Source: Botryllus schlosseri
Taxonomy: Eukaryota
Assembly (NCBI GenBank): GCA_051294905.1
Contig: CM119383.1
Coordinates: 2,852,001-2,916,000, forward strand
DNA length: 64,000 nt
Reading direction: 5' to 3'
Program-made: the position numbers and the translations under genes
The notes under the pieces: generated by a model
The model's input: the letters and a program-made list of their open reading frames with translations, nothing else
Told to the model about the DNA's origin: nothing
Databases searched by the model: none
In this document: piece after piece, positions 34,241 through 63,368 of the stretch
Numbering within the stretch: position 1 is the stretch's first letter
Layout: every line of letters begins with the position of its first letter

Positions 34241-36488
34241 ATGCTAAAAGACGGAGTGTTCGTAATTATTGCGATTAGTTGCGCTGAAGGTCTACTCAAT
34301 TCCAATGAGGGTAAGAAGAAATTGCTATCCTTACTTGCCTAAATTTGACTAAACCTCTCATGGAATGCATAAATTAGCATTACCAGAGTTGAGACGGTGG
34401 GAAATACAGTATCATAACACGAGGTACATGTCATCAAACAACAGCCGATACTGCATTGCAGGCAATAATATAACTATAGTGTGATTTATTGTCATTCTGA
34501 AGATCAAATACCAAAGCTAGACGGCTAATCTATCCAGAATTTACTGACCTCGGACTTTGGTGCTGGTAGAGAATTAGCTACTGTCCACCCATGTTTCGTT
34601 AAATTTCTTGTAACTTATCCTACACCTACACTACAGTCATCGAACAAACCTCGGAATATATTAGCGGTGATATCCTGGAAATGTCTTACGTCTTAATCAG
34701 TCATAATATTCTTAGACCGTATATTTTACACCTCAACGGGTCATTGTTCATTTAAAGAGGTTAAGGTTCTAATCGTCGGTGTGTCACTGTGAATGATAAA
34801 GCCTAACTTACTGATCAAAGGCCTTATTGGAAATTTACCAACTTTATGGATAACGCAAATTCCCATGTGCAGATTGTGCACACTCTTTTTCGAGTTGATC
34901 AATGCGCTTATTTTCTGAAGTGCAATATATAACATGCCAGGAAAATAGTATAACCTGTGTATCATTCCCCACGCTCAGACTTTCAGAAGAGTGTATGAAG
35001 TGCCAATTTTTATCAAGCAACCTTGCAATATTCCACTTACAGTAATGACGTCGACCTTAAATTTAGACGTCGATGCCTGCGAGTCTTCTGTATGTTCTGG
35101 AAATGCTGCCGGCACTGATGGATCTCAAGGCTGTGCTTGCACATGCAGTGAGCATTGCACAAAAGATGGTTGTAGCTGCAAGCGTGAGTCGGAATTTTAA
35201 TAGGTGTAGCCTACTCAGCCAATACAGTTTTTGTAGTTGTATCAGGAATGCTTCACAGCGGCATGGTGTCGCAGTCGACTAAATTCATTTATCTGATCCG
35301 AAATTTCGTAATTTCCAGCATATGTCGTCTTCAGCGATTATTCCGTGAATGCAACAATATCGAGCCTTCATATAAACTTTTACATTACCCCGCGTTGGAG
35401 GACGACAGAGTACATTGAACTTTTTCATATTGAAATTTCCGGAAGCAAACACAAACAAGTATACAACAACGTGACGCTGGCCGACTTGAATGATGGCGTA
35501 AGTAATAGCAAATTCGCAAATCTATCACAATTTTAAACGAAAGGAATAAGCATAAGCATGGCCCGTGTACGCCCAGCAGTGGTTCGGTGCCTACGATAGG
35601 CCCCGAGCGATTCTTAACCTGAGGCGCTACAGGAGCATTTTGAATCAGACCATGGACCTTTCATTATTATTATGGAATTTGTGAAAAGTTTAATGCTGGT
35701 TGTCCCATCATTCCAGCCATATATATTCATAGTCTGCTGACAAAGGCATTGATGCTACTCTGATGGTATTAACGAATATGTTATCATTCATTTATCAGAA
35801 GAATCTCCCCGTTAACGGTCTGGAACCCTACACGCCGTATAAGATATCTGTAAAGGCGGTCAAAACAAACAAGTCGGCGGTCTTCAACAACACTCTGGGT
35901 ACTAAGGAAGTTTTCACGGCAAATTCAAGTAAGAGCTTCGCATAATCGAAATGAGTTGATATCGCTTCTGAATAACATTGATTTCGTCAGCGGCCGCAAC
36001 CCCAAAGAATGTCATCGTGACAAACGGAACCAGAGATCGTGCTACCATCACGTGGGAAAAACCTATTGAAATAGGATACGGAGTGGTTATATCGTATGAG
36101 CTGTGCTGTACACTAGCAAACGATTCCGCAACCAATAATTTGGCAGAAGCGCGAAACGTATCGTTGGAGCAGCAAGTGAGCGTTTCTACACCGCCATTTT
36201 AAATGTTGTACATTGCAGTTATGCCGTACCGTATATATTATATACCAGACCCGGGCAAAGTGAGGTCCGCGGAGCTATTCTGAGCGGCCCGCGAAAAGTT
36301 ACTTGGAATTCAGAACATAAAACCTTCTTTTTATTATTTCCGCGAGGACTAAAACCTGAGGCTGTAAACTGAATCTAAAATCCGTTCACGTTCAAGCCTG
36401 TTCATTAATATGCCGCGATTACACAGCCTATGTAGCCTACCTCGCACGCGCAATCTGATAAAATTGCTAATAAACCAATGATGATGAT

Positions 36489-36539
<51 letters not shown>

Positions 36540-39500
36540 CCTAGATTCAAAATAAAGTCAATGTAGCAAACTTGGCTGTAACAGTCAAAGTCACAAGAAG
36601 TAACCAAACCTTCATTGTTGCCATCGTCCGATTACGCATTACACGGTCAGTGCCTCAAATTGTAACGTGATACGTTTGCACATCGCTAATTCGTAAAACA
36701 GGTCAATTAGTGCCTATGATTACTATGAGTCATCATCACCCATAAAGGAGAAACGGGAATATCAAACAAAGCCGAGGGGCGGAATTCATAGAAGGTTTTG
36801 AGCAGTGCTTCTTAACCGGTGGGTCGCGAAGCTGTTTAAGGTGGGTCCCGAAGACGTTTTAAATGTTACACTTTCGTATTCATTTTTCCAAATATTCCGA
36901 ACAGTTTATGTGGTCAGGATTTGAAGAGAAATGCGCATTCTCCTCCTCCAAATTAAATTGTGTTCCGCCCATAAGCGCCACAAGCGACGTTGCCGTGCTC
37001 CCGATAATTCGTGAGCCAGGTTATCGTCACAGTCATATTGATTGGAGCGTGAAATCCGAGGGTGAGGTATTGTGTGTGCGTGAGATTGAAATTCATTTTT
37101 TCCTCCAAAGTCTTTAATCTATAATCAACAAACAAATACCGCTACGCAAGCTCCTCAAAACCCTTTTGTGTTCGACGTGATGGACGAATTGCTCATTGGA
37201 TACGCGCTTTCTCGTCTGTTATTGTTTGTAGTATTCGGTGTTTGCCATTACCGCGTCACGACATACCAAGACATGAAATTCCGGCCAATATGCGACTCCG
37301 TGAAATGTGCGGCCTAAAAGATCGAAACCTAGGGTATATATATGCTGAATTTTACATCGACTAGAGGCGCCTAAATGGCTGTTGAACATGATATAAATAT
37401 TGAAATGAAGCAGGATATTTTTGGCTGACACTCGTCAGGGGTAATCGTCAGCAACAAGTAGAGAATCGGAAAAAAACATTGTATATCAACAATCGTATGT
37501 TGACATTTGCTGATATACAATGTTCTTTCCAATTCTCTGCTATAGTTGCTGACGATTACCCCTGACGAGTGTCAGCCGAAAATATTCGGGTTCATTTCAA
37601 TATGAATATTCCATTCAATTGTATATTGAAGCTCTGTACCTCCCAGAAGCTCTCTAAATGGCTGTTTCCAAATATTATGCTGTCGCTAAAATTCATAGTA
37701 TAGTATACGCAATCGCCAATATCGCTGACCGAATACCATCATGAATTCTGGAAAATATTAACGCTAGGCGCGACCGGATGACTGTGACGCACTGAAAACA
37801 TAAAAACTGCCACTCATTAGCAGTGGTTTAAACGTTAGTCGCGGAAGAGCGTCTGGTGGGTCGTGCAATGAAATTTGGATGAAAAGGGGTCGCAAACTGA
37901 AAAAGGTTGAGAAGCACTGGTTTAAAGCACTCAGTCAGGGGTAAACCCGTCTTTTTAGAAGTGAGCGTCCAGCAGGTCGCCCTGTTACGTACACTAGTTG
38001 AAGGGAGGGCGAATTTCAGAAGAACTTCAAGTCTCGATCAACTATAAAGCTATTTCACCGAGCAGCGACCAAGACAATACGCTTTGTAGCATTTCAAATA
38101 TACAGTTTAACATGTATTGATAGGAAAATGCTGATAGGGGTTTAAAGAGAGTTCAAAATGTATCCTGTTTAACATTGGTTCGAAATATGGCGGCCAATGA
38201 ATATTATTTTTTGGTAATTAACCGTCACTTTCTCATTCTCTAATATCAACACATCAAGTGGGCAATATTTACTAACAGCGTAATTCACTTCTTTCAATGT
38301 AGAAATAAAATTAACACGGCCCGCCAACGTATATTTCTGCTTCTCATTTGGCCAGCGGGGAAAATGTTTGCCCACCCCTATTATGTACTCTATATATCTT
38401 GAGGTCACACGCCCGATTACGAGCCGCTCACACCAACAAGACTTGAGGGACAAACGGACAACTAGAAAATTTTCAGCTTTTCCTAATTAGACTGGAATTA
38501 GAATTACAGCTATACATTATTTTCCAAATTAGACTAAAATTAGAATTATGGCTACACGGGTGTTTTCCAAATTAGATGAGAATAGGGATTACCGCGCGAA
38601 CACTTGGTAATTGAATCATAGATCGGTTCATATCAAATCACAGTTCATTGTCAGAAGCATGAAAATGGCACATGTCTGTACAGCAAGCTTGGCTCATTCC
38701 GCACAATATAGTTCCAATGCAGCATTTTCAGGATAACCAAAGACAGTTAAAAAAAAAGTACATTAAAATTAGATTACCGGTATTTCGCAGTAATTATTCT
38801 AGCCATGCAACTGGAATTATCTATTTGTCCAAGTCTGTCACCAACTTGTCTGAATTCGCGCTTAACTTAAATCATTCTTGCGAGCTGACTTAAATTAAGA
38901 TTTTCGATTCACCTCCGGTATATTGATTAACGCTAAAATTTTATCGGACATCACATCAGAAATGAACCTTAATATTAGTACCCAGGTTTAATGCAACCTT
39001 GTGCAGGCTATATAGCCGCATGAATTCTTGGAGCTTTATCGTTCTTTTTTAATCGTTATATAAGGTCACAGGATTTAGTTTAGATGCGAAGGCGAACCCC
39101 TGCTTGACTTTAGTCGTGTTCGAGATGCGTTGGTGGGTCAGGTTGATAAAAGGTTTCAACAATAGAACGTTGCTAGCTACGGGTCCATCGTAATCAGGAT
39201 CATCAATTGTTGTTGATGACGACAGCCCTTCATTGCGTAAGCTGTGGCCTACTAGCCTTTTTCTTGTACACAATTATTCTATAGATACAAATTTTAGGAT
39301 CACTGGCGAGGTACAGCTTGGCCGACTATCACCCACAAGATGTATTTTTTCGAAGGTAGCCGTAATTTTGAGCCCGAAAGACATATGAAATGATTTTTAA
39401 TCGTGCAAAAAAATACACCATCCAGCAACACATTAAGTTAAACCGATCCCCCTTTTCGTTCAGTGCGAATTCTTTGATCACACATACACTGCTTATACGT

Positions 39501-42500
39501 GGGTAGGATTGCCAAGCTACCTAAATATATCATTCCGGATAAGAGCATACACATCAAGAGGACCTGGAAATTTTACAGACAACCAAACCGTTTATACAGG
39601 TGGATACAATATCATATATCTTAGCTACAAAAATTCTTGTTTGGTTTGCACGGTAGTTTATGTATCTTGTAAACCTCGAACATTATGCTAAAATGCCACC
39701 AGTCACAGACGGTATAGGCTATAATACACAATAACGACGCACTATTATAGGAAATCGATGTGATCCTTGGGAAGCATCTCACGATATGATTCACTGCGAA
39801 GACATGTACGGCTTGATACAGTCATCTGGACCTGTACGAGTTTCCCTCACTATGAATCATGTCAACTCCGCTCGGAAATGGAGCATCAATCTAACGCAGT
39901 TTGCCGGATGGAGAGCAAAAATTGTATTTTTGGAAGAAGAAGATGAGTAAGTTTAGGGATACGGGGACACATAATCAAAACAATTACGAAGATATAAAAA
40001 AGAAAAGGCATGCCGTAGCCCAAGAACTAGAGATTACATGTCATCTGAGCGTTCTTCATCAATCTAGAAGTGAAAGTTTGACCGGGCTTTGTACTAGAGC
40101 AAGGGTTTCCAGACTTTTTATGGTCGTGACCCAAATTTCGATTTGAAAATGTGTTGGGACCTACCTCTCAATTTGGCGTGCTGGTTACTAAAAAAGGGTC
40201 AGAACCTTCGTCCAAAGCAACTCACGGCCTATGTGTGAAGCTGGCGACTGTGCGCAGTAGTAGCAATTACGATCTCGTCAATATCCGTCCTTAGATTACG
40301 AAACACTATCAAGTTTCAAGAATAAGCAACGTATAGGTCTTTTGGAACGATTTCAATTTATGTCCAATCTAAAGTACTGCAACTAGAAACGCGAAACACA
40401 GATAACGATGTATACCAATGATTCCCAACCTTTTTCGACTCATCGCCCCCTTATCAATCTCGACACAAATTCTCGACGTCTTCTTTTGATTTTTATTATG
40501 CTGCCGGCACTTTAACGTTCATAATGATGGCCAGACACGCAGACACTAACCTCAAGTTATAGTAGGTTGCCATGTACAATAACGTTTGGAGCAGAGGTCT
40601 CAAACACGCGGCCCGCGAGAACATTTTGTGGGGCCCGCGACGGGATTTTGGAATTTCAAGTATTCGACAATATATTCAAGTGCCGTAGATCTTTTTTAGA
40701 TTTAAGAACCTAAAGTTCACTCTGAAACTACTACAAACTTCACTATCACATCACTTTTAAAATCTACTATGCGGTAGACGATCAGCTTTTACGTCGCATT
40801 TGTAGTTCCTGGTGATAAAACATGACCCGTTGATGATTCGTGACTTAAAATTGTGATTTGGTTTGGTGCGACCTTTCGAAAAATAACTCGATTTCGGATT
40901 TCGTGGGTGATAAAATAAAATGACTCTATAGTTGAGTCGTGTCAAACGTTAAAATCAAAGAACCTGCGACTCGGAACGCTGACTTGGTAATCCTACGGAC
41001 GCAACGATCTATGAAACTGTCATGGGGAATAGTAATACATCAAAAGGTCGTAGCTTCCGTTGCGTATGGCAGGGTTGTAATGACTCGAGTCATGACTCGA
41101 CTCGAGTCACGATTTTCTGATGACTCGACTTGACTCGAGTCAATCTGTGTGTTGACTCGACTTGGACTCGAGTCATTGCGCATGACTCGAACCAAGTCAT
41201 TGACTCGAGACTCAGACGGCCAAGACCGACATTTCATTGTAATTCCGAAGCCAACACACTATTGAGATTTCGTCTGTTGGAACTGGTACTTGAAAATGCG
41301 ACCAGAAACTGCTAAAAGTGAGGAAAATTAATATATTATAAATGCGAAACATTCGATATCACCAAACAGAGTTATAAAAGTGGGTTTTAAAAGACTTTAA
41401 CTGGAAACTGAGCAGTCAACACAATGACTTGGACTCGGACTCGAGTCATAATTCCATGACTCGGACTCGACCCTCTGCTCGCTGACTTGGACTCGGACTT
41501 GACTCGGCGGTGAATTGAAATGACTCGACTTGACTCGAGTCAAAACTATAAAAGTGACATTGACTTGTGACTCGGAGCCTTGTGACTTGGTTACAACCCT
41601 GGCGTATGGCAGAGGTCTCAAACTCAAATGTGCTCGCGGGCCAGTTTTCCAGTTTTGACGACGCCGCGGGCCGCAGCATTTGTAGGGGTATTTTATGCCT
41701 TTCCAAGTAGGCCTTATTTGGCGGGAATGAATTGTCCTATTGAAAGTGCGCCGATCCAGCAGACTGACAGTAAACACAGATCGTCAAAATTTGATTTACT
41801 TTTGCATCAATTTAGGCCTGGCACGAAAAGAATCATCACATATATAACTATTTGAATGGAATTGTTGTTGTACTTGATATATATTAATTATAAGATATAG
41901 ACACCATATGGGCGGACAAATATATGGTGCCATCACGAATGCTATCGGGTTATAATTTTGCAGCTACTATGAATATTTTGAATTTAACAGATTGATAATA
42001 GAGACTGTTCTGATATCAAAACATTTTTAGGTTGAGCATTGTAATTCCAATCCAGGACTCAGGTATACTTCTGATAAGTAGGCTATTAATCTCATGGCCA
42101 AATATCTTCAAATATAGGAGCAGAAAAAAATATAAATATAATATAAATATATTATTGAATGTGTCCTAGTGATTGAAATGTCGGAACGCCGAACGGCCCA
42201 TTGTTGTTACATCGTTGGAGCGTACCACCACGGTACTCGGTACCTTTAAGTGGCCTTAATAATATGATTTAGCGACCAAAGATGTAACTAACAGATTGCC
42301 AATGGTTGCCATAACTACTTGCTTAGTTAGCGAAATACCAAGCTGCGACCTTCTGATCTATTACTATTCCCCTGATACGCGATTAGTTTGTTGCGTCCAT
42401 GGTTCTAACAAATTCGCGGCATTCCGAGTCACTCCGAGTCCACTCGAGTCATTTTCATTTTGTCATCGAGTTAGCCCGAGTCTGAGTAATTCTAAGAAAG

Positions 42501-45500
42501 GTCGCGTCCAAGTCCAACTCACAAACTTCAGTCATGAATCGTCTTAGGGTCAGGTTTTGTCGTCATGAATTGGAAATGTGGCGTAATAGTAAATCTTCCA
42601 CTGCATGGTAGCGTTTGCAATTGATGTGATAGTGATGTTTGATGAATATAGTTTCAGGCTTTCGGAGCAATGTCAGAGGGAATTTTCACTTTATAAGCTG
42701 AAAAGATATATATGACACTTAGATATTGTCAAATTAATAAAAATCTAAAATGTCGCCGCGGGCCGCCCAAAATGCTCTGGCGGGCCGCGTGTTTGAGACC
42801 TCTGACGTATGGTATATAGCTATTTAATCAGGTCAGCAAGGAAACCATGGCCATGCTGTGGCCTACGTGACGTATAGTTGGTTGCATCCTGAGTGTTGTT
42901 TGTTCTACTTATTCATGTTATTATCGGTGGCGAGTAATGGTACTATCCACAGCTGTAACCCCAATGGATTCTTCGGCGATTGAACATTTCTATTCCTGGG
43001 GTCCGTACTCCGTAGACCCTTTCGGGGTACGAAGCATCACATCAGGGGGTACGAGATGCATTGTGGAATTATGCATATATGATGTGGAATATTTTCTGGG
43101 CCAATTTATTCAACTGGAAAATATTCTTCGCGCTAGTCGCGATTTTATGTGAATGGGCTTTCTGATTTTAATATAGGTGCCATCGCAAATTGTGTTAAAA
43201 ATGGACTGGGAGTACGAGAAATCTTATTGAAAGCTCAAGGGTACGATCGCTAAAAGCTCAGGAACCAATGCTATTTCTATGGCACAATAATGATTATATT
43301 TTAATTGTTCTTGATCTGTTCCGATAATACTGGAAGGCAAATCTTACGCTGATTTAATTTGACTTTGACAATGACAGTAAACACAGCCTACTTAACAGGA
43401 CTATATAAGAAACACGGGTTATGCTATACAGCAGTGGTCGGGAACCTATGGCTCGCGAGCCACATATGGCTCTTTTGGGTATAAGATGTGGCTCTTTGAC
43501 ATGTTTTTAATTTTGTACCTAATTTTATCGATATTGCAGCAACTTGTTAGTAAATTATCACAACGGACAGAATAGTTATTCTTGTGGCAGCATAAACATT
43601 TATTTGAGAGGTCAAGACAGTGCCGTATCCAGGTTAAGTGCTCGGACCCCTTTACAAAATGCTCAAATTTAAGTTGCTGTCGCGGCAGCGACCAATATCC
43701 CTCGCGAATTCGATGTACTCCGCATCGCGCTCTATGTAATCTTGGATTGTACCACACGTTATAGGAGATCAAAGAGAACTAGGACGTCTATATGACAATC
43801 TAGTTTTCAAATAGGCTACACATTGTCGGCCTGATCTACGCCGAGAAATGAACTGTTTTGGAAGTGACATTCCAATTACAAATCGAAATTACAAACCACG
43901 CTTGGCTATCCACGTTCTTCATTGATAAGTAGCTTTCTAGTAATTCCGTTAAAATGTAGGCGTTTAGTGCAACGTTTATGTTACCGCCGAATTGAGAAGT
44001 CGATCAATATTTAGATTTTCGGAATCAGTGCTGCAGTTATATTAGATAAATATCAATTATTTTAAATTCTGAGCTATTTACGAGGAATTGCGCTACCACA
44101 GGATGATTAGTAGCCTACCAGATTTTACAGAAAAAATACGGCGCCCACGACTAATCCAATGTAGTGAGTTCGAATTTGTACTACCATGACGTCACTAATT
44201 TTCAATTGTGACGTAACACTTGATTGACATGTATGGCTCTTTGGGACTTGAAATGGAAAATATAGGTCTAAAATGGCTCTTCAGAAGAAAAAGGTTCCCG
44301 ACCACTGCTATACAGCGCTCAAATGCTCTGATATCAGATCGAACTTAAGTAAATTACAAAATATTCTACATAAAATTGAGGCAAGTCAAAGGTCCACCAG
44401 CTGCAATGTTATAACCCGACAGATTTGACGATGTCATGATATGTCCTCTCGCATGATGTCTATAACTCAATATTTTAACAAAATATGCCCGGCGCAAAAA
44501 CAATTTTATTCAAATATTTGAAAATGTGATTTTTCCGTGCCAAGCGTGAATAGTATAATAGTAAATGACATTTTCACGATGTTTGTGGAATGCCTGTCTG
44601 CACGGTCCGTCAAATAAGGCCTTCTTGGAAATTATATGCATTGAATATACTACCCGTATATTATTGATGCTGCGGCCCGCGGCGTAATCAAAAACTAAAG
44701 AAATTGGCCCGCGAGCACATTTGAGTTTGATACCTCTGGTATAGAGTAATATCTTGTGTACCATTCCTCAGAGGTCTTGTCTTCTTCTATGAAATAAAAT
44801 GTTCAGAAATGAGCCTCCGATACCATCCGCTTAATTGGCATTATTGTAATAGTCATTGGTATTTAATTTTCGTCGGCGCGACCCCAGAGAATAGGCAAAC
44901 GACCCCATTGCGGTCGCGACCGCTAGTTTGGGAAACCCTGTACTAGAGGCGTAGGGGCCCAAATCAGACCGCAATTTCAGTCCGAGAGTTCGGATCAAAT
45001 GTACGCGAAAATGAATTCATTTCAGTTCCTATAATTTCGATGGTCTAACACGGGATGGATCAAATACCAACATCTTGTACCCGAACATGATAGCTACAGA
45101 CGAGCAAAATATTCTTTGGATTGTCGAGACCTCTGAACAGAGTCAACGAGGTTTTGAGCTTCAACTGGAAATCGAACTTGGTGAGAAGCATTCAAAGCTT
45201 AGGTTGAGTTGCCGAAATCGTATTTTCTTGCTGGAAAATGAAATCGATTTTGTATAGTACTGATGAAAACGTATTTTGCAGATGGTGATGATTGTGCATC
45301 ATCGCCATGTCTGAACGATGGGATATGTATCGACAAAAACTATGACTTCGAATGTAATTGCACAGCGGAATGGGCTAATAAAAGTTGTCAAACGCGTGCG
45401 TATAGATATTAGTTGGAACAACACCACGTCCGTAGCTTGCTCGGTATATTGTTTCGTCAGCTCGCCTAGACCCTGATGTGAATTGCATGCCTCACGAGAG

Positions 45501-48500
45501 AAATGTAACTTTGAAGTACAGCATACCGGGAGGATGGGGAAATGACGAAACCATAATTAGGGTAAGAATTGGCTTGTATACGTGTATTTGCTCAGGGGAA
45601 AGCGGTATTGAGTTTTGATTTGACCCGTGTTTGGAGGGCTGATACATTGTGATTTCATCATGATTGTGAAGTGAAATATTGATCGGTTCTAACCACTGGC
45701 GTGGTACTACACAGCATTGACCCATGTACAAATGCAAACGGTAATTGAGACATCACATCGAAAAACCGAGCGTGTTGTTTAGGGATACAGCTGCGAAATA
45801 TGGTCTGATGGAATCGTGCAGCACAATGCCACAACGGTAGGAATTCGGAAACGAGAGATGGAGTTGCCTGGACTATCTCCGTTCACAAACTATACGATTC
45901 TATGCTATGTAAAGCCGTCAAAAAGGAGTGCTGTATTGTTAGCGAAAAACCTTTCATGCGAGACGTTGAAGGATGGTAAGTGTTTTTGTTTACAGAAGTG
46001 TCCAGACATCATCTGTAGGTGTCGATTTCAAGACGTTTTCATGATAAATCGCATAAATTCCACGTCATAATGATGTAAATGAGAATATGTATAGATGTCA
46101 TAGCATTCTTCTTTCGAATTGGCCACAACTGTAGGCTACCTCACGAAAAGTTACCTCACCGTGCGCCACGAAATGGTTTCTATCTTCAACAACTCATCCT
46201 CTCCCCACCTGATTACCTGTGATGTACCCCAAGGCTCAGTATCTGGTCGGTCCTTTTCACGTTATATGTAAATGATATTTTCAACGATAAAATTGCCAAA
46301 TACCTCAGGAGAACTCGACACGAAAAAGTACCGGTAGAATAACATTATAGTTCACCTACCGATTCATGTCACTACCTTTCTATCGCTTGTCTTTTTTCTT
46401 ATCTTCTGTTACTTTCAAATCATGTCACACGTCACTGCATGTTCTAGCTAAGCAGATATATCTAGAACTCTAGTTCTAGTTCTAGATATCTCTGGAGCCA
46501 AGCCAAGGTGGGTATTTGATTGAAAGTCTATTCGATTTCATCGCAATGATGTTTTCAAATTAGGAAATTATTAATGAAAACTGGACTGAAGATAGGCCTA
46601 TCGGCGCAAATTACCAGTTATTACAATCACAAATTACCTCGTATACATTATATTATTCCAGTTCCCACTGTTCCTCGGAATGTCACCCTATTACCGGGAA
46701 ATCAATCGATCAAAGTATCATGGACACCACCTGCGGAACCAAGCGGTGAAGTAACGTATACCGTGTCAGTTAACTCAACGGTAATTATGCGCCACTCTTG
46801 GTTAGATTCTCGAGCAACTTTACCCCTACGTAGTATTCATTGCAACTATTTATTTCATAGCTGACAAGCGGCAGGCCGAATCTCAAATTTCTGTACTTAG
46901 AACAGCAGCGTGGAACCTTTTGATTACCGCGGGCCGCATCGATCGCAAAAAAAAACTTTTTCTGTTCATTCTCACGAGATCTCTCCGATCCTATTACTAG
47001 GCTATGCAATAGGGCAGGGGCCGGCGACCTTTCGTGTGCAACGTGCCAACATATGTCAATTTCAAAAATATTACCAACTGGCGTGCCAAACATTTATTTA
47101 TCGTTTCAAGCAAGGAAATCTACCAATCGCTTATCTGAAGCTGCCAACGGCACCGGTTACGCTAGTGGTTCTCAAAGTATGGGTCGCGAAAGGTATAAAT
47201 TATGGTACACAGCTACGCACAACAGCTATCATCTAATGTACATATTATTTGCTTAATTTATTGCGAAAATAATTATTCGCGCTAAGTGTTATCTAATGTG
47301 GTTGCTTTTGTAGTTTCTGTAATCGGTACCAGGGCCAATAAGCGACACACGCACCATCGTTGTTACGACGCGGTATGGCTTGATCATGATAAATATACCC
47401 ACTCCTGTACCATACAAGTCGGTTGACACATAGGTTTGTCAGCAACGCTCTAAACGTCGCGGTAAATACTGTCGCTGTTCAAAATACATTGGAATCACTT
47501 ACTCGTATCAGACTAAACTATGGAATAAAATCTCCTTTCGCGAGATGAACGCGCATTTCGCATTTCGTCGCGGGGCTCATTATTTTACCTGCGGGTCTGA
47601 TTTGCACCGAGCGACTCAGGCTGCGGGCACAGGACTATTCAGCCCCGGTCATTTCGACGCCTGGATATATCAATATCGGAAGTTTTGCAAGATTTTATCG
47701 CCGCCAGTCGTTTTAGGAGCGCAGTTAACGGAGGCGCATGTCTCCCGAAACGTTATCTGTGTTGGTGTCTCCTAGCTTAAAAACACCCAGCGCCGAAATG
47801 CCGGTTCCTAATAGTAGCGCTACCGCGCAGGCTGCGCAGAGCGCACCCCTAGACTAGAGCATCCGAACGGCCACATACGATATTAGCATGCAGTTCACTT
47901 ATAATTGCTAATACGTTTGGAGTCATTGCTGTATTATATTAAGCATAGTTTGTATTTTTTCGATGTATTTTTGGGGGTATCCACAATAAAAGGAAATCGG
48001 TTCAATTAAATCGCGCCATGCGCGAAGAACATTTTCAAGTTAAATAGAATAAAAAAAATCGCCCTAATTATACCATGTCGTGTGTACCAATTCATTTGAC
48101 GTGCCATGAAAAATCACTCGCGTGCTACAATTGGCACGCATGCCAGGGGTTGCCGACCCCTGAAATGGGGTCTTGCATTCCAGACTTTCAATTCTCCTGT
48201 TTGGTAGTATTAAAGGGGAAGTGAGCAGACTTGGACAACTAAATAACGCTGGTTGACTTATTTTTAGCAAAATGCCGGCAATCCAATTCTATTCCTATTT
48301 TGTGAATTGTTTCCGCGCTGTAATTTTAATTCTAACCTCTGAAAAGGCTACAGGAGAACTGTATAGTGCGAAACGAGCCAAGCTACGCGTATACACTGTA
48401 CAATGTACATGCATTTGCCATTCTCGTGCTTACGAAAATATACTCTGCGTTGATGCGAACTGTGCTGTTGAATTTCTTTATAACTCGGAATTTAATTCAA

Positions 48501-51500
48501 TCTCCAAGTTTTTGCGAATGCAGGAATTCTAACCTAATTTGAAAAAAAAACTATGTAGCTATAATTATAGAATAATTATTCGGAAAAGCTGTAAATTTCC
48601 CAGTTGTCCAACTCTGGAAGTGAGGGCACTGCACAACGCCGTAACTTCCACGCCTCTTCAAGTTATTTCGTAACACAACATTCGTCATCCGAGCCGGGAA
48701 TTCGGGATCGTTTTGGGGATCGAAACATTCCAGAATCAATCGCTCAATAATTCTTAGCGACACCATATTCTTTTTGTACCAGGATCATGAAGAATACAAC
48801 GAAACTGAATACGTCAACGTTACAACTTCCATTACTGACACTGTATTCTACATTCGAAACCTACGTCATTACAGAACGTACGCTGTGGTGGTTCAGGTCA
48901 AAAACACAGAGGGAACAACGAATGCGGAAGCTGTTCCTGGCTGGACCAGTCCCGGAAGTATGCTCAACGTAACCAATGTTTAGTGAAATGATTTCCAATA
49001 ACTATGTATAATAAAGCACCATTGGAAATTTATGGAAAAGTAGCTGGAATCACATCTGATTCTGCAGAAAATGAATGGTCTTGTCCGAACGATTTTTGAA
49101 CTAATGACCTTTCATGCAAACAAACCTTCTGTATGTCTCACAGTACCTCGCGCTGTTGATGGATTCAGTGTAATTGCAACTGCGACTCAAATCAATATCT
49201 CATGGATCCCTCAATCTCCTTCTGTTGGGGAAACGACATACGACCTCAAACTTACAAACGCTACCGCCAATTGGATGAATTCTACCGACGTTACAACGTT
49301 CACGTTTACGGACCTGATGCCGTACACTAACTACAGCATCACAGTAAGCTGCATATTAATTAACATCAAGCTACGCTCAGCGATCTATTCTACTTGCTAA
49401 ACAAAATTTTATGTATCATAATTATTAGTCACCCGTTATTAGATTTAACTCAACATCTTAGCGGCGACCACGTTTTGTAATAATTCACCCTGTGATAACA
49501 CACAGTAGTTATTCCTGCAATACTAACTCAATATCGAAACGGGCATGATTGTCATTGTAGTTGATGTTTATCAGTACAGCAGATAGGCTATGGGTAGGTA
49601 GACAGTAGATACGTACCTATCGTTTCATTTTATCTTGTGGTGCTTTGAAATGATAAAATAATATATAAAGTGAATAAAGTGATACTGATACACGACCGTG
49701 TACGCCTTTGTAGCCTAATATTTTCGCGTATGTCGTGTTTAGATCAGTGGTTCTTGACCGCCGGTCCGCGACGACTTTTCTGCCGGTCCGCCGGGTGAAT
49801 AACAATTTTATCCCTTAATTTCAAGATGCAATTTGTTTAAGGCTTTCGATTGCTAAATTAAATAAAATGTCAAATTTTAAACACATTCAAAACTTCGTGA
49901 GGTAACATTGGGTCTGGAAAAGTATTTGATTTGACTTGAAGTTCAATCCGTGTCATTTGACGACATGCAAGCGACCAGTACAAGCTGACTCACTAAAACG
50001 TACAGTTTGCGCGATTATTCGTTTTCGATCAATTCATTTTGTGCGGGACAGTAACTGCCACACCCCAAACCCCCCAATTCGACCGGGGCCGAGCTTGACG
50101 GGGGCCCAAATTATTCGTGAATGAACATAAATTATAAAGTAATTTTTGAAACTTTATCCAACTTTTTCAATTGTTTTCGCGATAGTGTCGCAAAATTTCT
50201 TCATTATCGGGTGCGCTTCACACAAGAAATACGCTTAATTTATATAAATAGTCATTTCGGCATCAGCCATTACCGCGCCACGACGCACCAACACATAATG
50301 AAGTTTAGGCTAACATAAGTAGGCTTACCATATTTTGGAAATCTAAAAAGAGGACACTTTTTCAGAAATTTGCAACTTGCAAAACCGGAATACAATTCTC
50401 AAAAACCGGTGAATTTCTCCCACTTTGCGATCGGTTGACTAAAAAAAAAAGGTCATCTTTCCCGCTCACAGCTCAAAATACCGTTTTTCTCTCCACATTG
50501 CCAGGTGGATGACTGAAAAAAAAAAAAAAGTCATCTTTTCGCTCAGAGCTGAAATCACCGTTTTTCACTCCGAAATACCCGCGGGAGCGTCAGTTCTGTG
50601 CTAATTTGCGGCATATCACTCGCATTTTGCTCTAAATCTGACCTAAATTTTCAAAAAAGAGGACAAAATCTCAAAAAAAGGATAAAAGGGCGTCCTCCGA
50701 GGACACTTTCAAAAAAGTAAAAAAAAAGGACAAATCCTCTTAAAAGAGGACGTATGGTAAGCCTAAACATAAGACTCCGAAAAGTGTGGAAAAATTCGGC
50801 AGCGAGAAAACCTTAGCTGAAAACGACTGCACTTTTTGAACGAAAATTGCGATATATATATATATGTATAATTTTCCATCGACGCCTAAATGGTTGGCGT
50901 CGAATGTTACTGTCCTGGCAATCTGTACCCCACAGGACCAATGCCATACCACAGAGAAAATAATTTGACAGTGAAGAAGTAGCAATTTTGAATCGTGTTC
51001 GTCTTTTAGTTTAGAACGCTTCGGCGATTTCAATATCTATTCAAAATATAACAGACAGTAGGTCACAAAATAAATACACCCAACGAAGTAACTATTCCAA
51101 CTGGCCCGCCCTAACATGTTTTACTATTAACTACACGCCCTTAATATTCCAAGACGACTCCTCATTCAGCTTTACCCGAAAATCTTCTTATGGGATAAAA
51201 AATTTATAGTAATATATATGCATTGCAATTACCAATACTATGCAAATACCAATATTGTTGACCGATTCAGTCACGAATTATAGAAAATTTTCCCGCTCGG
51301 TGCGATTAGGTGACAAAAACTCTCTGCCTGCACTGAGTAGAATGAATATACTCACAAGTACTAGTGGAAACATCCACACAACTGTGGGGTATTGGGGGCT
51401 GGGGCCAAATCCCCAGGTGTTTGGTTTATCGCCCTATGGGGGGCCCAAGACCAACGTGAGCAAGATAGTACGATAAGGTGCTTGGCTCGACTCCGAAACA

Positions 51501-54500
51501 CTTCTTCTCTCGCTATTGTCGAAAAGTAGAATATTATTCGAGTGTGATCGGTTAAATCCATTGCCTTCTGTGCGAAAGACTGTAAGCGACTCTCGGCGGT
51601 AGCACGTTGGTTTGGGCAAGGCAATTTTACCTCGACTCAGCACAATCAATACCGTAAAATCACATGGATGTCATCAAGAACATAATTAAGTACGATCAAA
51701 ACCCTCAAGATGTCACTCTCTATCACAATATGCTTGCAAAAATGGTTGTATACGTTACGTTTTGGGGTGATTTCAATTTCTGAAGGTCCATCGGTCCGCC
51801 AAATATTTTTGGAAATTTTGCCGGTCCGCCAACGGTCCGCGAGGTGAAAAAGGTTGAAAGCCACTGGTTTAGATCATGATTCGTGGACATGGACATTGTT
51901 AAACAATAGCTCCGTGAAATTTATAATTATCGCATGAATTCCAAGGACCTCAGTTATCTCACAATTGGGCGTTATTTCAAGGTTACGGCGAAGACAAATG
52001 CCGGGAGCGCGGGACCATTTCTGAAAACCATTGAGACCGAACAGTACATTCCTAGTCGACCGCGAAATCTTTACGTTTTTCCGTTTAGTCCCGGTAGCAA
52101 TGTCTCGGTCAAATGGGAAACACCAGAATTCCCCAACGGCATAATCATCGCTTACACGTAAGCTGTCATACTGTATTTACAACTGTTGTTATGCTACCGA
52201 AATACCATGAAATTGTGTCTATATCCATTATTTTACCAGCCTAAAGGGGAGACGGGTCTTCCCAAGTTCAATAGTATACCAGATGATCTGAGCACTAATA
52301 CGTTCTCTAAGGGTGTCTCGACTTCATTGGTGATACTGTTATGTCTAGCCACCCGTCTATACGGTGTTTACTTTATCAAATTTCTGTTAACTGCATTTTT
52401 ATAATGTATTTGTAAGATTTAACAAATAAAAGATTCCCTCTCTCTATCCGCGAGAGTTGCACACTATTTATTCAGTGTGTATATACAGTGGTACATTGGA
52501 GTATTCGGTTGTATTAAGTTTGTGGCTAATCGATACCGAATTGAAAAACTCAAATTTAATATCAAATATAGCCTAACAATATGTAAATTTTGCAAGTCGT
52601 ATACGTTAACAGCCTGCCATTAACAGTTCCGAATGGAATGGATTGTGACAGGATCGTGGAAATAGCGTTGTCATTCTAGCCAGACATCAAAATTCATGTG
52701 TTGCAATATTGGCGCTATTATTCCATGATCGTGAACAGAAACTGTATATTTTCACATATCAGCAGTGGCCGGTATCGGATAATACTGATAAATATGAGCG
52801 TTGCGGTTCAACGTTGCGGTTCGAACCAAAGCGTGGGTTTTGGATCTGATTCGTCGTTTTGATTTTAGCCATACTTAAATATTGAGACAACATCCCACAG
52901 ATGCGAAATGGGCATACGGATAAACTGCCTCGATGCGACATTACCTAACGTCAATCTCAACAATGTGGCACAGCTAAGGTTGTGATTTACTAACAGAATC
53001 AAAGGTGTTAGCTTCGTGAAATCTATGTACAGACTAATCTTATTGCGTGACGTAATACTGTACGGTTGGATACGCTGTAAGCATGCTGGGTATTCCAATT
53101 CACGTACCGTATGTTTAATCAGGGTAACATGGTGGCCAGGAATAAGCCACAATGTCACCAATACCTCCTACGTAATTCAAAACTCGGGGTGCAGAACAAT
53201 CAACTCAATCAACGTAACAGCTTGGACTGAAGTGGGTCACAGTGACACCGCTAGCGCACCTGTTACCAAATCGCAGTCCGGTAAGATCGTGTTATATTGG
53301 TAGGTTAGCAACGCGACTAAATTACATATCTTCAGAACCATGCAGTCAAAGAGATCCCTTAAAGTTCGAGACGCTGCTTAAAAACTTTGCGTCTGGTGGG
53401 ATGTGTTTACCTTGCGATTTCGCAAAGCTTCAAAATTCTACGAGCACAACTGTCAGAGACAATTTGACATGCACTGAAACTTTGGTGATAGGATTCTACG
53501 GTATATCCTGTCCAGAGGTGATGGGAGCTTCTAAATTTGCTGTGGCCGAAATAGAATCAAACACCACCGAATTGAATCATTATATTTCCACTAAACACAC
53601 TTTCGTGGAAGGTACTCAAAGACGCAAGACCCTCATCCCCCCGGTCGACAATAAACTAGTTTCAATCAGCGTTTTGAATCCGGAACAGCAAGATTCCACT
53701 GGACTCATTACTTTTTCGTATGCTATCGACTATGACAGCGTGTTCAGGAAATATTCTTACGACTTATCGTTCGATACAAGCCAAGAAGGATTGCTTCGCA
53801 CATCGTACAGATACTCAAGTCACAAGCCAGTAGGAGTCTATCTTCGGGAAGATTTGATATTTGATACTTACGGAATTGAGTGCAATGATCGTGGAGGTGT
53901 GGTTGAATGCGTCAGCAATCATACAACAGTATTCGCTGTCTTGCTTTCGGTGGAAACGATTGCGATACCAAGGAGTTTAAAGGTGAGTCAAAAATTGGAA
54001 ACCCTGTTCCCTGTTGATATGCACCGCAAACACAACATGTACAATTAGGAATATAAAATAAATGAATTCTTTATCTCGGAATCAAAAGCGCACAAGTACG
54101 ACACACGCGCGTCCACGTCGTCCAAATATCACATGATCGACCGAAAAGATCATCGCTCCATAAAATATGCCGAACGTGTATCCCGCCGGCCATCCGACAG
54201 TCGACGAGCGTGTCCACATTCAAGTCGAAATACAAGCAATTACTACTACATAAATACAGTCCATCTTCAAAATTACCGGACCACGACTGACCTATCGATC
54301 TTGCTTCCCATAACATGCCGCCGTATTCTTGTCGCTTTCTTTTTCAATACTGTCTTCTTTACTTTCATTCAGTGTGCATGCCTCATATTTACATTGCCTA
54401 GGCCAAGGTGGGTGTCCGATTCCATAGACTACTCCAAGTCACTTCGACATCTTCCTGTCTATTCATTGTATCGCATTTTTTGTGGTGCATTGAACTGTTA

Positions 54501-56604
54501 AAATTGCTAATAAACCAATGATGATGATGATGATAAAACCAGGATTAAAATTTGAGACAACGACGTCATAAGGGAGACGATGACGTCAGAACTTCCAAAT
54601 CCAAAATTGGTCGGAACAGCTTTTTTCTAGTATATCACCGTCAGCGATTTTCTACGCAACTCATCCCACATAAATAAGATAAGAAAAGGTTTGAAGTATA
54701 ACCAAATGAATATAGCTTTAAAATCAACTTTACCGAGATGCTGTTGTTGCTCGGTGCCGTTTTGAGTTTACACTTTGTTTACAGATCTTCGCGGTTGTCG
54801 CTGAATCCACATCAGTGTTCTTTCTATTCATAACTTTCGTGATACTACTGAGGGTCAGGAAACGAACCGGCGGAGAACGAATTCCCATCCAGATAAACCT
54901 ATCAGTGTCTTTGTTGCTTCTACATTTCTGGGTGCTATGGGGAGATATCGCATTGGAAATACCGGATTTCTGCAAAGCCATCGGGGTTCTCACTCATTTC
55001 TTTCTGCTTTCGTCAGGTATGGAACCATGTTTTGATATACGAAAAGTTGTCTAAAATCACGTGGTTCATTAGCCTAACGCACTAATTTCATCACCAAATC
55101 CAGTGGTGCTGAGTCTTACTATGAACGCTGACGGTGATTGTTAATATAATGAGACTTACTTTTCCTCTGTCACTCAGCGTTTTGGATGATGAACGAAGCC
55201 AATTTGCTATTCTTCAAAACCAGTAAATGGGCGGCTACGTCTACGAAACGCAGCAAGATCGTTGTCGTTACAATGTGTATCGGATGGGGAATTCCGTTTA
55301 TAATAGCGGGGATAACTGCAGCAGTCGGCTTCGGTCGAGGAGTGTACATGGAAAAAAGCGACTACCTGACGCACGAAGATTATGAAAAAGTGTCTATTTC
55401 CAAACAAGGACCGCAATACAATCATTGCTTGCTGAGCTCCAAAAACGGAACGCGTCTAGCCTCTATCATACCAGTAGCAATTATACTCGCATACAACCTT
55501 GTAATGGCAGTGAGAGCCGTGATATTCGTTCACACTAAGCGGGCAGAAGTCAAAAAGTACATGCCGTCCAACCAGGATGAAAAGACCAAGAGTAAAATGA
55601 TCTCGGAAACTCTCGACAACGTATTGCATTTACTGAAAGTGATATTTCTGCTTCTTCCGGTGCTTGGGGTACCGTGGATCCTCATACTATTATCAAGTGA
55701 GTTGCATATCATTTGCGAGCAATGCAGCTAAGGCGGCCTACTCAAATTACGAAGACTTGTCTCTATAATCACGGAAAGAAGAAAAATGGTCCACTCCGAA
55801 TAGCCTTATTATACGACTCTGTGTATACTTATAGTTGCGTAGTCCGGTGGAAATAAAACCTCAAATTCTTACTTAGCCGCAATAGAGCTGTTTCCAAGTC
55901 AAGCGAAAGATAAAATCAAACTGATGATCAGTGTAGATTGTGGAGATGCGTGACAGACTTTCGGTACCAATCGCCAATGACAGATTTCAAAATTGCAAGA
56001 TTCAAATTAGCGACTATATAATAGCCAAGAAGAAATGATGGTGCGACAAATAGGTAGGCCTGCAATGTTAGAAAATTACAACCCGTTAAAAATAACTACT
56101 TTGACTCCCACAAGCAATTGAGAACTCCAAAAAATACAGATATTGCTATATTGACTGCCTTTTATACTTTGGTTCCGTATATCTAGCATCACACACACGA
56201 TAACACCATGTATGCTATAGATTGCCATCGTGTCATACGATCTGACATGTAATATTGCGTACATATTTTATGTTTATAGACCTAGCTGAGTTATCATGAT
56301 GCGCGATTTTTTAACAGATTGGGGAAGCGAATCCATACAACTGAGCTTCCTATACGTAAACACTTTGGTGAGTGGATTGCAAGGAGTGTTCATATTTCTG
56401 ATTTATTGCGTTGCCGACACCAAAGTGCGGGGTGCTACAAGGAAATCGATCGCTACTCTCAACTCTATGTTGCCGAGCATATCCGATTCTCGATACGGTA
56501 TTAGCAAGCAAAGGCGCGCTGGAGGAAGTACCGACTTTATAGTGGAGTCAGGTGGTTCTGCGTCCCGTACTGAGACGAGACACAGCTCAACGTCGACACG
56601 TTGA
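34241..56604 (+). CDS. Adhesion-class GPCR, ~1362 aa: SP-EGF-like-FN3-FN3-CUB-like-EGF-FN3x4-short GAIN/GPS-7TM
   Basis: 20 phase-consistent GT-AG exons: 34241-34310, 35067-35183, 35319-35497, 35799-35928, 35991-36175, 39464-39599, 39751-39946, 45026-45180, 45282-45395, 45461-45561, 45783-45975, 46662-46780, 48783-48957, 49144-49343, 51982-52157, 53123-53280, 53336-53982, 54785-55016, 55178-55696, 56318-56604 (4089 nt). FN3 motifs GLEPYTPY, GLSPFTNY, DLMPYTNY, PSRPRNL...VKWETP. EGF DDCASSPCLNDGICID. GPS-like CVSNHTTVFAVLL. Family-B-like TM motifs THFFLLSSAFWMMNEA, GWGIP, LLPVLGVPW, GLQGVFIFLIYC. The first exon (MLKDGVFVIIAISCAEG) is the least certain. Confidence 0.92.
36460..36540 (+). repeat. 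(GAT)n tract, probably the tail of an extremely 5'-truncated LINE
   Basis: About 20 GAT units preceded by aaattgctaataaacca, the same 17-mer that precedes the (GAT)n tail at 54501-54534. Confidence 0.8.
36803..37919. mobile_element. hAT (Buster-like) MITE in an aGPCR intron, hosting a palindromic MITE
   Basis: TIR cagtgcttct(t/c)aacc at both ends. Flanks gttttgag / gtttaaag (6/8). Confidence 0.75.
37390..37612. mobile_element. Palindromic MITE family A (~220 bp hairpin)
   Basis: Arms ggctgacactcgtcaggggtaatcgtcagcaac..gtagagaat and its reverse complement. Single arms at ~1410-1492, ~4430-4512, ~10912-11005, ~14615-14700 and ~16292-16370. Confidence 0.82.
41070..41601 (+). mobile_element. 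MITE family B, full length
   Basis: TIR cagggttgtaa / ttacaaccctg. Perfect TSD gcgtatgg. Confidence 0.92.
41610..42804 (+). mobile_element. Family C hAT element (inner copy)
   Basis: TIR cagaggtctcaaac / gtttgagacctctg. TSD gcgtatgg / acgtatgg. Confidence 0.88.
43432..44307. mobile_element. hAT (Buster-like) MITE
   Basis: TIR cagtggtcgggaacct / aggttcccgaccactg. Perfect TSD ctatacag. Confidence 0.92.
46150..46560 (+). mobile_element. Degraded LINE: reverse-transcriptase fragment plus 3'UTR remnant
   Basis: 46155-46290 reads YLTVRHEMVSIFNNSSSPHLITCDVPQGSV then frameshifts, matching the CR1/L2 RT motif YLxxRxQxV...GVPQGSVLGPxLF. 46360-46520 resembles 54290-54430 (gccaaggtgggt). Confidence 0.7.
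46453..46494. mobile_element. 42-bp palindromic micro-element, same family as 33496-33536
   Basis: cagatatatctagaact...agttctagatatctctg. Flanks tagctaag / gagccaag (6/8). Interrupts the LINE 3'UTR remnant. Confidence 0.7.
47015..48162. mobile_element. hAT-type MITE
   Basis: TIR caggggccggcgacc vs caggggtcggcaacc with gtgcca subterminal motifs. Flanks caataggg / aaatgggg (6/8). Confidence 0.72.
49745..51866. mobile_element. 2.1 kb hAT (Buster-like) element hosting a family G MITE
   Basis: TIR cagtggttcttgacc vs cagtggctttcaacc, with ccggtccgc motifs at both ends. Perfect TSD gtttagat. Confidence 0.88.
50320..50765 (-). mobile_element. MITE family G, nested
   Basis: TIR taggcttaccata / tatggtaagccta. 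Perfect TSD aacataag. Confidence 0.9.
54085..54534 (+). mobile_element. 5'-truncated LINE (CR1/L2-group-like): ORF2 C-terminus, 3'UTR and (GAT)n tail
   Basis: AHKYDTRASTSSKYH...RSIKY then, after a frameshift, TFKSKYKQLLLHKY, matching the HxYxTR...SIxY...FKxxxKxxLL ORF2 terminus. Ends aataaaccaatgatgatgatgat. Confidence 0.75.
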
Positions 56605-56940
56605 AATGAATTGCGATGTCTATCATTTTAGTGAGAAAAAAATCGAAAACCTGTCTTATACTTACGAAAGCATGTTATTATTTCTAATTATACGGTGTAT
56701 TTACATATTTCAGATATTATTAATATGTTCCGCTGTATTGTATTGATGATGTTGTTCTACTTTTACCAACATTCAAGGTCTATCGAAGTTTATGTACTCA
56801 ATTTTATGAAAACGTTCTGTCTCATTTTTCGCACATAGCGCTGTGCGTCGGGCTCACATGCAATCATCATTAAATTTATCAACTTGCTGATATTTGTTTT
56901 AACGTGAGTGTGGTATAATGTATATGTTTGTATATACTAT

Positions 56941-62345: not shown

Positions 62346-63368
62346 TCATTGACATGGTTCAGCGGGTTCGTTATGCAAATGTGCGTTTCGAGACCTTTGA
62401 CATAGGTGGGTATCTGGGCAGCTTAACAGTCTCGAAGCGGATAGTGAGCCAAGACAAGAAATGTTTAAACACACTGGGAGATAAGCGTTAAGAGTAGTAT
62501 ACACAAACCTTTTCTTTAGGCAATACGAAGTTATGAACACGACGAGCACTATCAACGCAGCTCCCAACATTGAAGACAAGATGATAGAACCGATTTCTCC
62601 TTCTGTAAGTCCCGTGGCTGAAAATAAACCTTTTATCGCCTGCTGAAGTATTCCATCTCAAGATTCTAAACCCGAATTCAGTTTCGCAAATCCCAAGTCC
62701 TAATCCGTGCTCTTGTTATATGTGATGCTAATTTCACATCCTACGATTTTCAACAACACATTTAAAATGACACAACCGAATAACATTAGATCTAGAAAAT
62801 AATATCTTCCGATTTCAATGTGTGATCGTGATACCTCATACCTACACAAGATACTCCATCACCAACATGTCCCGACTTGCAATGGCATTCGTACGCCCCG
62901 ATGGTGTTGGAGCATATTGCGTCAAAATGACAGTAATTTAGCCCACTGGTGCACTCATCTTCATCTGTGAATATATACAATATACATATAAACGGCCGTC
63001 AACACGCATCAAGATCGCCAATACACAGATACAATCATTTCCAGAACGAATAAAACCCCCATCACAATTGCAATGGTACGAGCCTGCTGTGTTGCTGGAT
63101 GTTGCATTGGTATGCCACCCGTATAGGTCAGCAAAGCACTCGTGTTTATCTGTGGATTGTCAAACAAACCAAAAGACTATTCCGATACTGTCCGGTCACA
63201 TTGCTTTAGTCTGACATGAATATTTCTATTTTGGTTTACCTGTACACGGTCCATCGTCTCCTCCATAGTAACCATCGAAGCATTCACATTTAAAATTTGT
63301 CCCAGTTCTAATACATATTCCAGTGTCGACGCAAGGATCAGTAGGCGAATCAATACAAGCATCGATAA
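62346..63368 (-). CDS. C-terminal part of a single-pass EGF-repeat membrane protein, 5'-partial
   Basis: Exons 63368-63240 (IDACIDSPTDPCVDTGICIRTGTNFKCECFDGYYGGDDGPCT, EGF), 62964-62842 (DEDECTSGLNYCHFDAICSNTIGAYECHCKSGHVGDGVSCV, calcium-binding EGF), 62617-62509 (TM: IGSIILSSMLGAALIVLVVFITSYCLKKR). The last exon (~62430-62346) has an uncertain acceptor and frame. Confidence 0.85.

Follow-up and report, generated by a model that had tools for sequence, protein, structure and literature searches.

Positions 34241 to 56604 of a 64-kb window of Botryllus schlosseri DNA (positions 2,852,001 to 2,916,000 of contig CM119383.1 in assembly GCA_051294905.1; coordinates below count from the first nucleotide of this window) contain many stop-free stretches on the + strand with clear domain signatures. 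We assign these to one expressed gene, which encodes an adhesion G protein-coupled receptor (GPCR) of 1,250 amino acids that belongs to a tunicate-only expansion and combines an ectodomain array of fibronectin type III (FN3) and EGF modules with a GAIN domain and a seven-transmembrane (7TM) region. We give this reading a probability of about 0.8. The original prediction, made from the nucleotide sequence of the window, had proposed a GPS-7TM receptor of 20 exons with an RPTP-like FN3 array, two EGF modules and a CUB-like module.

Gene model and ectodomain modules

The gene model was built on the + strand of the window by bookkeeping of splice sites and phases. It runs from an ATG codon at 34241 to a stop codon at 56602 to 56604, with GT-AG introns throughout and no internal stop codons, and has a coding length of 3,753 nucleotides. 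The single multi-exon frame was thereby recovered, with 18 exons instead of the 20 suggested originally. From the N-terminus, the predicted protein consists of a signal peptide, an 8-cysteine module, 2 FN3 modules, an EGF module, 4 further FN3 modules, a short GAIN/GPS region, the 7TM region and a tail rich in serine and threonine (Table 1). A hydropathy peak was located at amino acids 1 to 19, and the ectodomain contains 34 N-X-S/T sequons.

Table 1. Exons and protein modules of the adhesion GPCR gene, and the open reading frame upstream of exon 7
Feature	Position in window	Strand	Amino acids	Description
Exon 1	34241-34310	+	1-23	Start codon and signal-peptide-like N-terminus; donor GTAAGA, phase 1
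Exon 2	35043-35183	+	24-70	8-cysteine module; phase 1-1
Exons 3 and 4	35319-35497, 35799-35928	+	71-174	FN3-1; phase-0 intron inside
Exons 5 and 6	35991-36175, 39464-39599	+	175-280	FN3-2; 3.3-kb phase-0 intron inside
Exon 7	45282-45395	+	281-318	EGF module; phase 1-1; 5.7-kb intron (39600-45281) upstream
Exons 8 and 9	45470 (alternatively 45461)-45561, 45783-45975	+	319-413	FN3-3
Exons 10 and 11	46662-46780, 48783-48957	+	414-511	FN3-4
Exons 12 and 13	49144-49343, 51982-52157	+	512-600; from 601	FN3-5 and first half of FN3-6
Exon 14	53123-53280	+	up to 689	Second half of FN3-6 (amino acids 601-689); followed by a 55-nt intron
Exon 15	53336-53982	+	690-905	Short GAIN domain (216 aa) with reduced GPS
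Exons 16, 17 and 18	54785-55016, 55178-55696, 56318-56604	+	7TM about 906-1190, then tail	7TM and 60-aa Ser/Thr-rich tail; 3' untranslated region to at least 56900
Open reading frame	45026-45254 (stretch 45015-45254)	+		Read earlier as probably CUB-like; outside the protein model

Between the signal peptide and FN3-5, all 7 module borders coincide with phase-1 introns, as does the border between FN3-6 and the GAIN domain, while no intron separates FN3-5 from FN3-6. The introns located within domains are of phase 0 in each of FN3-1 to FN3-5 and of phase 2 in FN3-6. The bookkeeping of splice phases thus confirmed the predicted phase-1 borders of most ectodomain modules, a signature of exon shuffling. 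It was also noted that the genomic open reading frame at 53218 to 54045 reads through the 55-nt GT-AG intron between the last FN3 exon and the GAIN exon, and since the frame stays open across this intron, the stop-free stretch overstates the exon.

The searches against Pfam, of language-model features and of structures were made on single exons or stop-free stretches, rather than on whole spliced FN3 modules. On single stop-free stretches, Pfam fn3 matches were obtained at E-values of 7e-8 and 0.004. Exon 12 (FN3-5) gave a full match above the gathering score (E = 7e-8, 33 bits), and half-domain matches below the threshold but in register were obtained for exon 4 of FN3-1 (E = 0.0017, profile positions 51 to 72) and exon 5 of FN3-2 (E = 1.2e-4, profile positions 2 to 51). 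Sub-threshold matches in register were likewise obtained for exons 10 and 11 of FN3-4 (E = 0.0014 at profile positions 3 to 37 and E = 0.015 at positions 41 to 75), and no fn3 match was found for FN3-3 and FN3-6 in this exon-level scan.

The 6 modules could nevertheless be aligned with the usual FN3 landmarks, and in a jackknife analysis, in which each module was scored with a hidden Markov model (HMM) of the other 5 and compared with 500 shuffled sequences, all of them beat 499 or 500 of the shuffles. The score of FN3-1 was 17.7 bits, as compared to a maximum of 9.6 bits for the shuffles, and the weakest module was FN3-2 with 8.8 bits, a score that was reached by 1 of the 500 shuffles. FN3-3 is a divergent module with 4 cysteines, which scored 10.9 bits, with the best of its shuffles at 8.1 bits; for exon 9, which encodes most of this module, fn3 clusters made up 73 of the 100 clusters nearest to it in the language-model search of the atlas, with a best score of 0.92. 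The label RPTP-like for the array was not supported, in that the comparison of a single FN3 exon with solved structures gave nothing significant, the only FN3 match being a designed consensus FN3 (E = 0.42).

One of the 2 predicted EGF modules was retained. Exon 7 matched the Pfam EGF family (E = 1.6e-6, 28.7 bits as compared to a cut-off of 21.5 bits) and contains the 6 cysteines of an EGF module. Exon 2 encodes 8 cysteines and had no Pfam match, and it was not classified as EGF; its look-alikes were of the cysteine-composition type only, resembling metallothioneins.

Transcripts and the GAIN-7TM core

The contigs of 3 RNA runs, from studies of 2015, 2021 and 2022, and the raw reads of a fourth run were aligned to positions 51000 to 56900. 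RNA runs from the same organism contained a fraction of 0.3 to 0.47 of the sampled words of 53218 to 56604, which is about the share of exons in this segment. GT-AG joints were identified in the RNA contigs at 52157>53123, 53279>53335, 53980>54783, 55012>55174 and 55696>56318, the first 2 of which were seen in 3 runs. A contig of 2,068 nucleotides extended from 55696 back through the exons to 51982 and continued for another 336 nucleotides upstream. The last 30 nucleotides of this loose end, which is the part displayed, correspond to positions 49314 to 49343 of the window, which are followed by GTAAGC and represent the end of exon 12. By length, the 336 nucleotides equal exon 12 plus 136 nucleotides of exon 11, which implies that exon 11 is also part of the transcript. 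A second contig joined 54845 to 56870, that is, from transmembrane helix (TM) 2 to the 3' untranslated region.

The RNA data thus prove exons 12 to 18, and the 2,068-nt contig places FN3-4, FN3-5 and FN3-6, the GAIN domain and TM1 to TM5 in the same transcript, as predicted, which removes the concern that the FN3 and 7TM exons belong to separate transcripts. For exon 7, the share of RNA words in a test of positions 45026 to 45395, described at the end of the last section, is consistent with transcription. With RNA in runs of several studies, the gene is real and expressed.

Some RNA signals were located outside the exons. The segment at about 53955 to 54545, in the intron between exons 15 and 16, had an RNA word depth in the thousands, as compared to about 10 to 40 for the exons of the gene, and was flanked on each side by numerous distinct loose ends. 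It matched no Rfam family and contained no internal inverted repeat, and looks like a dispersed, highly expressed repeat. RNA contigs with depths of 20 to 42, which is about the exon depth, were also located within introns at 51394 to 51787 and 52379 to 52575, and probably represent transcripts of transposon origin or pieces of retained introns. No Rfam match was obtained for the whole window.

The core of the receptor was identified by several methods. Two exons matched Pfam 7tm_2 (E = 2.8e-6 and 8e-12), both above the cut-off of 20.6 bits, and hydropathy peaks were observed for 6 helices, while TM3 fell below the cut-off. An HMM of the clade of relatives matched the protein model over amino acids 737 to 1232 with an E-value of 5.4e-135. 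An AlphaFold model of exon 15, based on 20 relatives, had a predicted local distance difference test (pLDDT) score of 78.5, with values above 90 across the C-terminal strands. In a Foldseek search of the PDB with this model, the top 6 matches were all GAIN domains, from CD97, CELSR1, BAI2 and BAI3, with probabilities of 0.97 to 1.0 but modest TM-scores of 0.27 to 0.42, and the atlas look-alikes of exon 15 were GPS/GAIN-B clusters. The structural model thus indicates a GAIN domain located directly before helix 1. Taken with the RNA contig and the 7tm_2 matches, this agrees with the prediction of a GPS-7TM adhesion GPCR joined to FN3 and EGF modules.

The core of the tethered agonist (Stachel) is intact, with the sequence T-V-F-A-V-L-L-S-V as compared to the consensus T-x-F-A-V-L-L-S-V in the relatives. 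Residues H196, T197, T198 and F200 of the GPS/Stachel segment were invariant or nearly so in 21 relatives, with F200 being invariant. Helix 6 has kept P-V-L-G-V-P-W, which contains the P-x-x-G motif and the tryptophan, and helix 7 has kept L-Q-G.

Relatives and origin of the FN3 array

The best match to exon 17 was a protein of 730 amino acids from transcriptome SRR32906214, here called P0001, with 58% identity and no FN3 modules. Over amino acids 696 to 1226 of the model the identity to P0001 was 51%, and in the 7TM columns it was 62%. All named matches were from tunicates, namely Styela clava, Ciona, Clavelina and Phallusia. The automatic names of these relatives disagree (E3-like, F1-like, L3-like and GPR133-like), and such conflicting names fit the class of "unclassified Adhesion" receptors described for the Ciona repertoire, in which 21 of the 24 receptors contain a GPS only (PMC2396169).

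In a phylogeny of the 7TM region, which had been suggested as a check against the ADGR families, the gene was the sister of P0001 with a support value of 100, followed by Styela clava LOC120347314 (XP_039273165.2) with a support value of 99. It was nested in a clade of 23 rows (support 95) and a cluster of 58 rows (support 96), the named members of which were all from tunicates, and the nearest outgroup was ADGRD2 from fish (support 87). The tree was inferred without the vertebrate subfamilies A, B, C, E, G and V, and with this incomplete sampling the gene did not group with any named vertebrate ADGR subfamily (A to G, L and V). The profile of the clade of relatives gave the best scores against the solved structures of ADGRD1 (6e-83) and ADGRL3 (1.4e-82), as compared to about 1e-36 for secretin-type receptors. 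Judging from these sequence comparisons, the 7TM region belongs to an expansion confined to tunicates.

The FN3 modules were not found in the relatives. A Pfam scan (E ≤ 0.001) of 46 long relatives identified 7tm_2 in 46, GPS in 42, Lectin_C in 3, Kringle in 2, Trefoil in 2, VWA in 1 and EGF_CA in 1, and fn3 in none of the 46. Nor was fn3 found in any of 10 relatives, 9 of which were also among the 46, that were scanned singly at E ≤ 0.1, and neither the ectodomain nor its FN3 HMM matched any of 127 retrieved proteins. With the GAIN exon as the query, a single match of 237 amino acids was obtained, which was neither the gene's own product nor an FN3-bearing ortholog, and P0001 as the query retrieved, at lengths of up to 1,277 amino acids, only Styela proteins without FN3. 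A Kringle-bearing relative gave 19 matches, none with fn3, a search too shallow to serve as a survey of architectures. In L002, the genomic contig of another relative, P0105, the match was confined to the GAIN part. The product of the gene was absent from the large protein collections that were searched.

The combination of a tunicate-only clade and long relatives without fn3 bears out the suggestion of a lineage-specific receptor. Since FN3 is missing from the relatives scanned, a recent gain is suggested, and by parsimony the FN3/EGF array looks to have been acquired after the split from the lineage of P0001. Exon shuffling may have joined the array to an older GAIN-7TM core, as suggested by the phase-1 borders of the modules and the nesting among receptors without FN3.

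We compared the gene with known adhesion receptors. To our knowledge, no human adhesion GPCR carries FN3. The members of the "unclassified Adhesion" expansion in tunicates have a homologous GAIN/GPS and 7TM region, and P0001 and, in part, Styela clava LOC120347314 share the reduced GPS (C-x-S-N-H-T-T), together with the Stachel. However, P0001 and the Styela relatives have only about 175 to 265 amino acids ahead of the GAIN domain, a segment in which Pfam identified nothing and which bears no likeness to the ectodomain of the gene, whereas the part before the GAIN domain in the gene consists of about 690 amino acids, with the 8-cysteine module, the EGF module and 6 FN3 modules. The vertebrate ADGRD (GPR133/GPR144) and ADGRL (latrophilin) receptors, whose solved structures scored best with the clade profile, are not orthologs and have different ectodomains, with pentraxin/LamG in ADGRD and lectin, olfactomedin and HormR in ADGRL. 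The best structural match of the short GAIN domain was CD97/ADGRE5 of the EGF-TM7 type (9mqr_A, E = 2.3e-4, probability 1.0), which also contains EGF modules in its ectodomain, but these are tandem and bind calcium, FN3 is lacking, and the GPS is of the canonical type and is cleaved.

FN3 has been listed among the ectodomain modules of adhesion GPCRs in the sponge Amphimedon (PMC4302439, Fig. 4) and in adhesion GPCRs of Salpingoeca and Capsaspora (PMC3251606), and a survey of holozoans from 2025 reported that FN3 is conserved in filastereans on the one hand and choanoflagellates or metazoans on the other (PMC12716839). As in the gene described here, FN3 is located in the ectodomain of a GPS-7TM receptor, but the lineages are unrelated, the domains are listed without a function, and the likeness is at the level of the listed domains. 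As far as can be told, the FN3 modules in the sponge, choanoflagellate and filasterean receptors and those in the gene represent independent acquisitions.

Adhesion GPCRs with FN3 are therefore already catalogued, and the view of this gene as the best candidate for undescribed biology in the window was not upheld; in the literature, we found no description of this particular receptor or of any FN3-bearing adhesion GPCR from tunicates. The objection raised with the prediction, that the architecture might belong to a family already on record, is thus half borne out. Lineage-specific shuffling of ectodomains is the norm in adhesion GPCRs, as exemplified by amphioxus (PMC2246102). Because modular ectodomains, FN3 included, already define these receptors, the gene is a modest lineage-specific variant that opens no new receptor class, with a combination of 6 FN3 modules and EGF that is absent from its nearest relatives while FN3 is recorded in other adhesion receptors. 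It provides a clean, transcript-backed example of exon shuffling, with FN3/EGF cassettes bounded by phase-1 introns on an existing GAIN-7TM core, in a host family that is a fast-evolving receptor expansion found only in tunicates. As the product is missing from the protein collections, the model is also useful for annotation.

Alternative readings, exon 13 polymorphism and neighbouring sequences

Several observations weigh against a single, intact receptor. Exons 1 to 6 and 8 to 10 were placed by frame and splice logic alone, and the link across the 5.7-kb intron likewise follows from frame logic only. It could thus be that 2 genes have been joined, with exons 1 to 6 encoding a secreted or separately anchored protein rich in cysteines and FN3, and with a shorter adhesion GPCR starting from an unseen first exon inside the long intron, comparable to its sister P0001 with only about 175 amino acids ahead of the GAIN domain. 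The RNA contigs, which were aligned from position 51000 onwards, hence provide no alignment for exons 1 to 11. However, exon 7 lacks both a start codon and a signal peptide, no terminal exon with a stop codon was found downstream of exon 6, and the end of exon 6 and the start of exon 7 are both of phase 1, with the frame open over all 18 exons. Moreover, the FN3 modules on both sides of the intron have the same split-exon layout, with a phase-0 intron in the middle of the domain. We consider 2 genes at this locus unlikely.

Other observations on the adverse side concern the GPS and exon 17. The Pfam GPS match was weak (E = 0.089, 13.8 bits as compared to a cut-off of 22.5 bits). The GPS consensus of the relatives is C..W..GC....C.C.N-H-T-T.F-A-V-L-L-S-V, from which the gene lacks the first and the fourth cysteine and the tryptophan. 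The P1 residue is a threonine, such that H-T|T is found instead of H-L|T, while the histidine and the threonine at position +1 are kept. With the cut-off missed and 2 cysteines and the tryptophan absent from the sequence, autoproteolysis at the GPS may fail to occur. Exon 17, which encodes 174 amino acids spanning TM3 to TM5, was very divergent, with 85 matches at E ≤ 1e-3 among 1.84 billion representatives, and a single-sequence search of solved receptors gave no significant match.

The same features were examined in the relatives. Among the tunicate relatives in the alignment, the consensus is likewise H-T-T and not H-L-T. The reduced form of the GPS was observed in a small subclade that includes P0001, P0105 and P0002, in which the fourth cysteine is replaced by serine and the first cysteine is lost except in the Styela protein; the form is shared by P0001 and P0105 and in part by Styela LOC120347314.

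A decaying or non-signalling receptor, either an adhesion-only protein or a young pseudogene, would account for the GPS below the Pfam cut-off and the few relatives retrieved with exon 17, but is distinctly improbable, in that the reading frame is unbroken across all 18 exons, RNA of the gene is present in the runs of several studies, the changes in the GAIN/7TM exons are mostly synonymous (see below), the motifs of helices 6 and 7 and the Stachel core are retained, and the sharing of the reduced GPS with P0001, P0105 and partly LOC120347314 indicates an old, retained state.

Taking the gene as one intact adhesion GPCR, a mechanism can be outlined. The FN3 rod, which is predicted to be heavily glycosylated, would bind a partner that belongs to an adjacent cell or to the matrix, and the GAIN domain would receive the resulting pull or binding signal. 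The tethered agonist, which is conserved (T-V-F-A-V-L-L), would then engage the 7TM region, which, with the motifs in helices 6 and 7 kept, may activate a G protein. For adhesion GPCRs, activation by a tethered agonist is the accepted model (PMC11810715). A role of the gene in sensing adhesion or mechanical force can reasonably be inferred.

The RNA contigs also revealed polymorphisms. In exon 13, the contigs of the 2015 and 2022 studies, which are independent, differed from the reference at 12 of 176 nucleotides, as compared to 0 to 5 differences in each of the neighbouring exons in the same contig. Of the 8 changes that were listed for exon 13, 7 were non-synonymous, resulting in 6 replacements (F>V, E>R, F>V, F>S, S>G and K>I), whereas 15 of the 21 listed changes in the GAIN/7TM exons were synonymous. 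Counted by codons, the ratio of non-synonymous to synonymous changes was 6:1 in exon 13 and 6:15 in the GAIN/7TM exons, a difference with a Fisher p-value of 0.023 in a small sample. The divergence of exon 13 could be due to a divergent allele, to selection acting on the ectodomain or to a chimera with a paralog, and is the only sign of something unusual in this gene.

Since the changes in exon 13 are dense and mostly non-synonymous while those in the GAIN/7TM exons are mostly synonymous, it is conceivable, but very improbable on the present sequences, that the FN3 array is a recent botryllid or styelid capture under diversifying selection and that the receptor acts as a polymorphic sensor of cell-cell recognition, with a GPS that is possibly uncleaved. 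If true, the sensor would operate in a colonial animal with the ability to tell self from non-self.

The predicted CUB-like module, upstream of exon 7, was rejected. No Pfam match was obtained for the open reading frame at 45015 to 45254 at E ≤ 1. The acceptor site at 45026 is good but breaks the frame, and the in-frame alternatives at 45094 and 45100 are poor acceptors. RNA runs in which the rest of the gene is represented contained only a fraction of 0.06 to 0.23 of the sampled words of 45026 to 45395, for which about 0.25 is expected if the EGF exon alone is transcribed and about 0.6 to 0.7 if both are exonic; the observed share thus fits the EGF exon alone. The CUB regions of 2 crinoid receptors gave no match on the + strand of the window in a tblastn search. 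Most likely, the open reading frame at 45026 to 45254 lies within an intron and does not contribute to the protein.

It was also noted that crinoid receptor EGF repeats gave EGF-like matches at positions 63259 to 63342 on the minus strand (E = 0.003 to 0.05), which is probably an exon of a convergent downstream gene.

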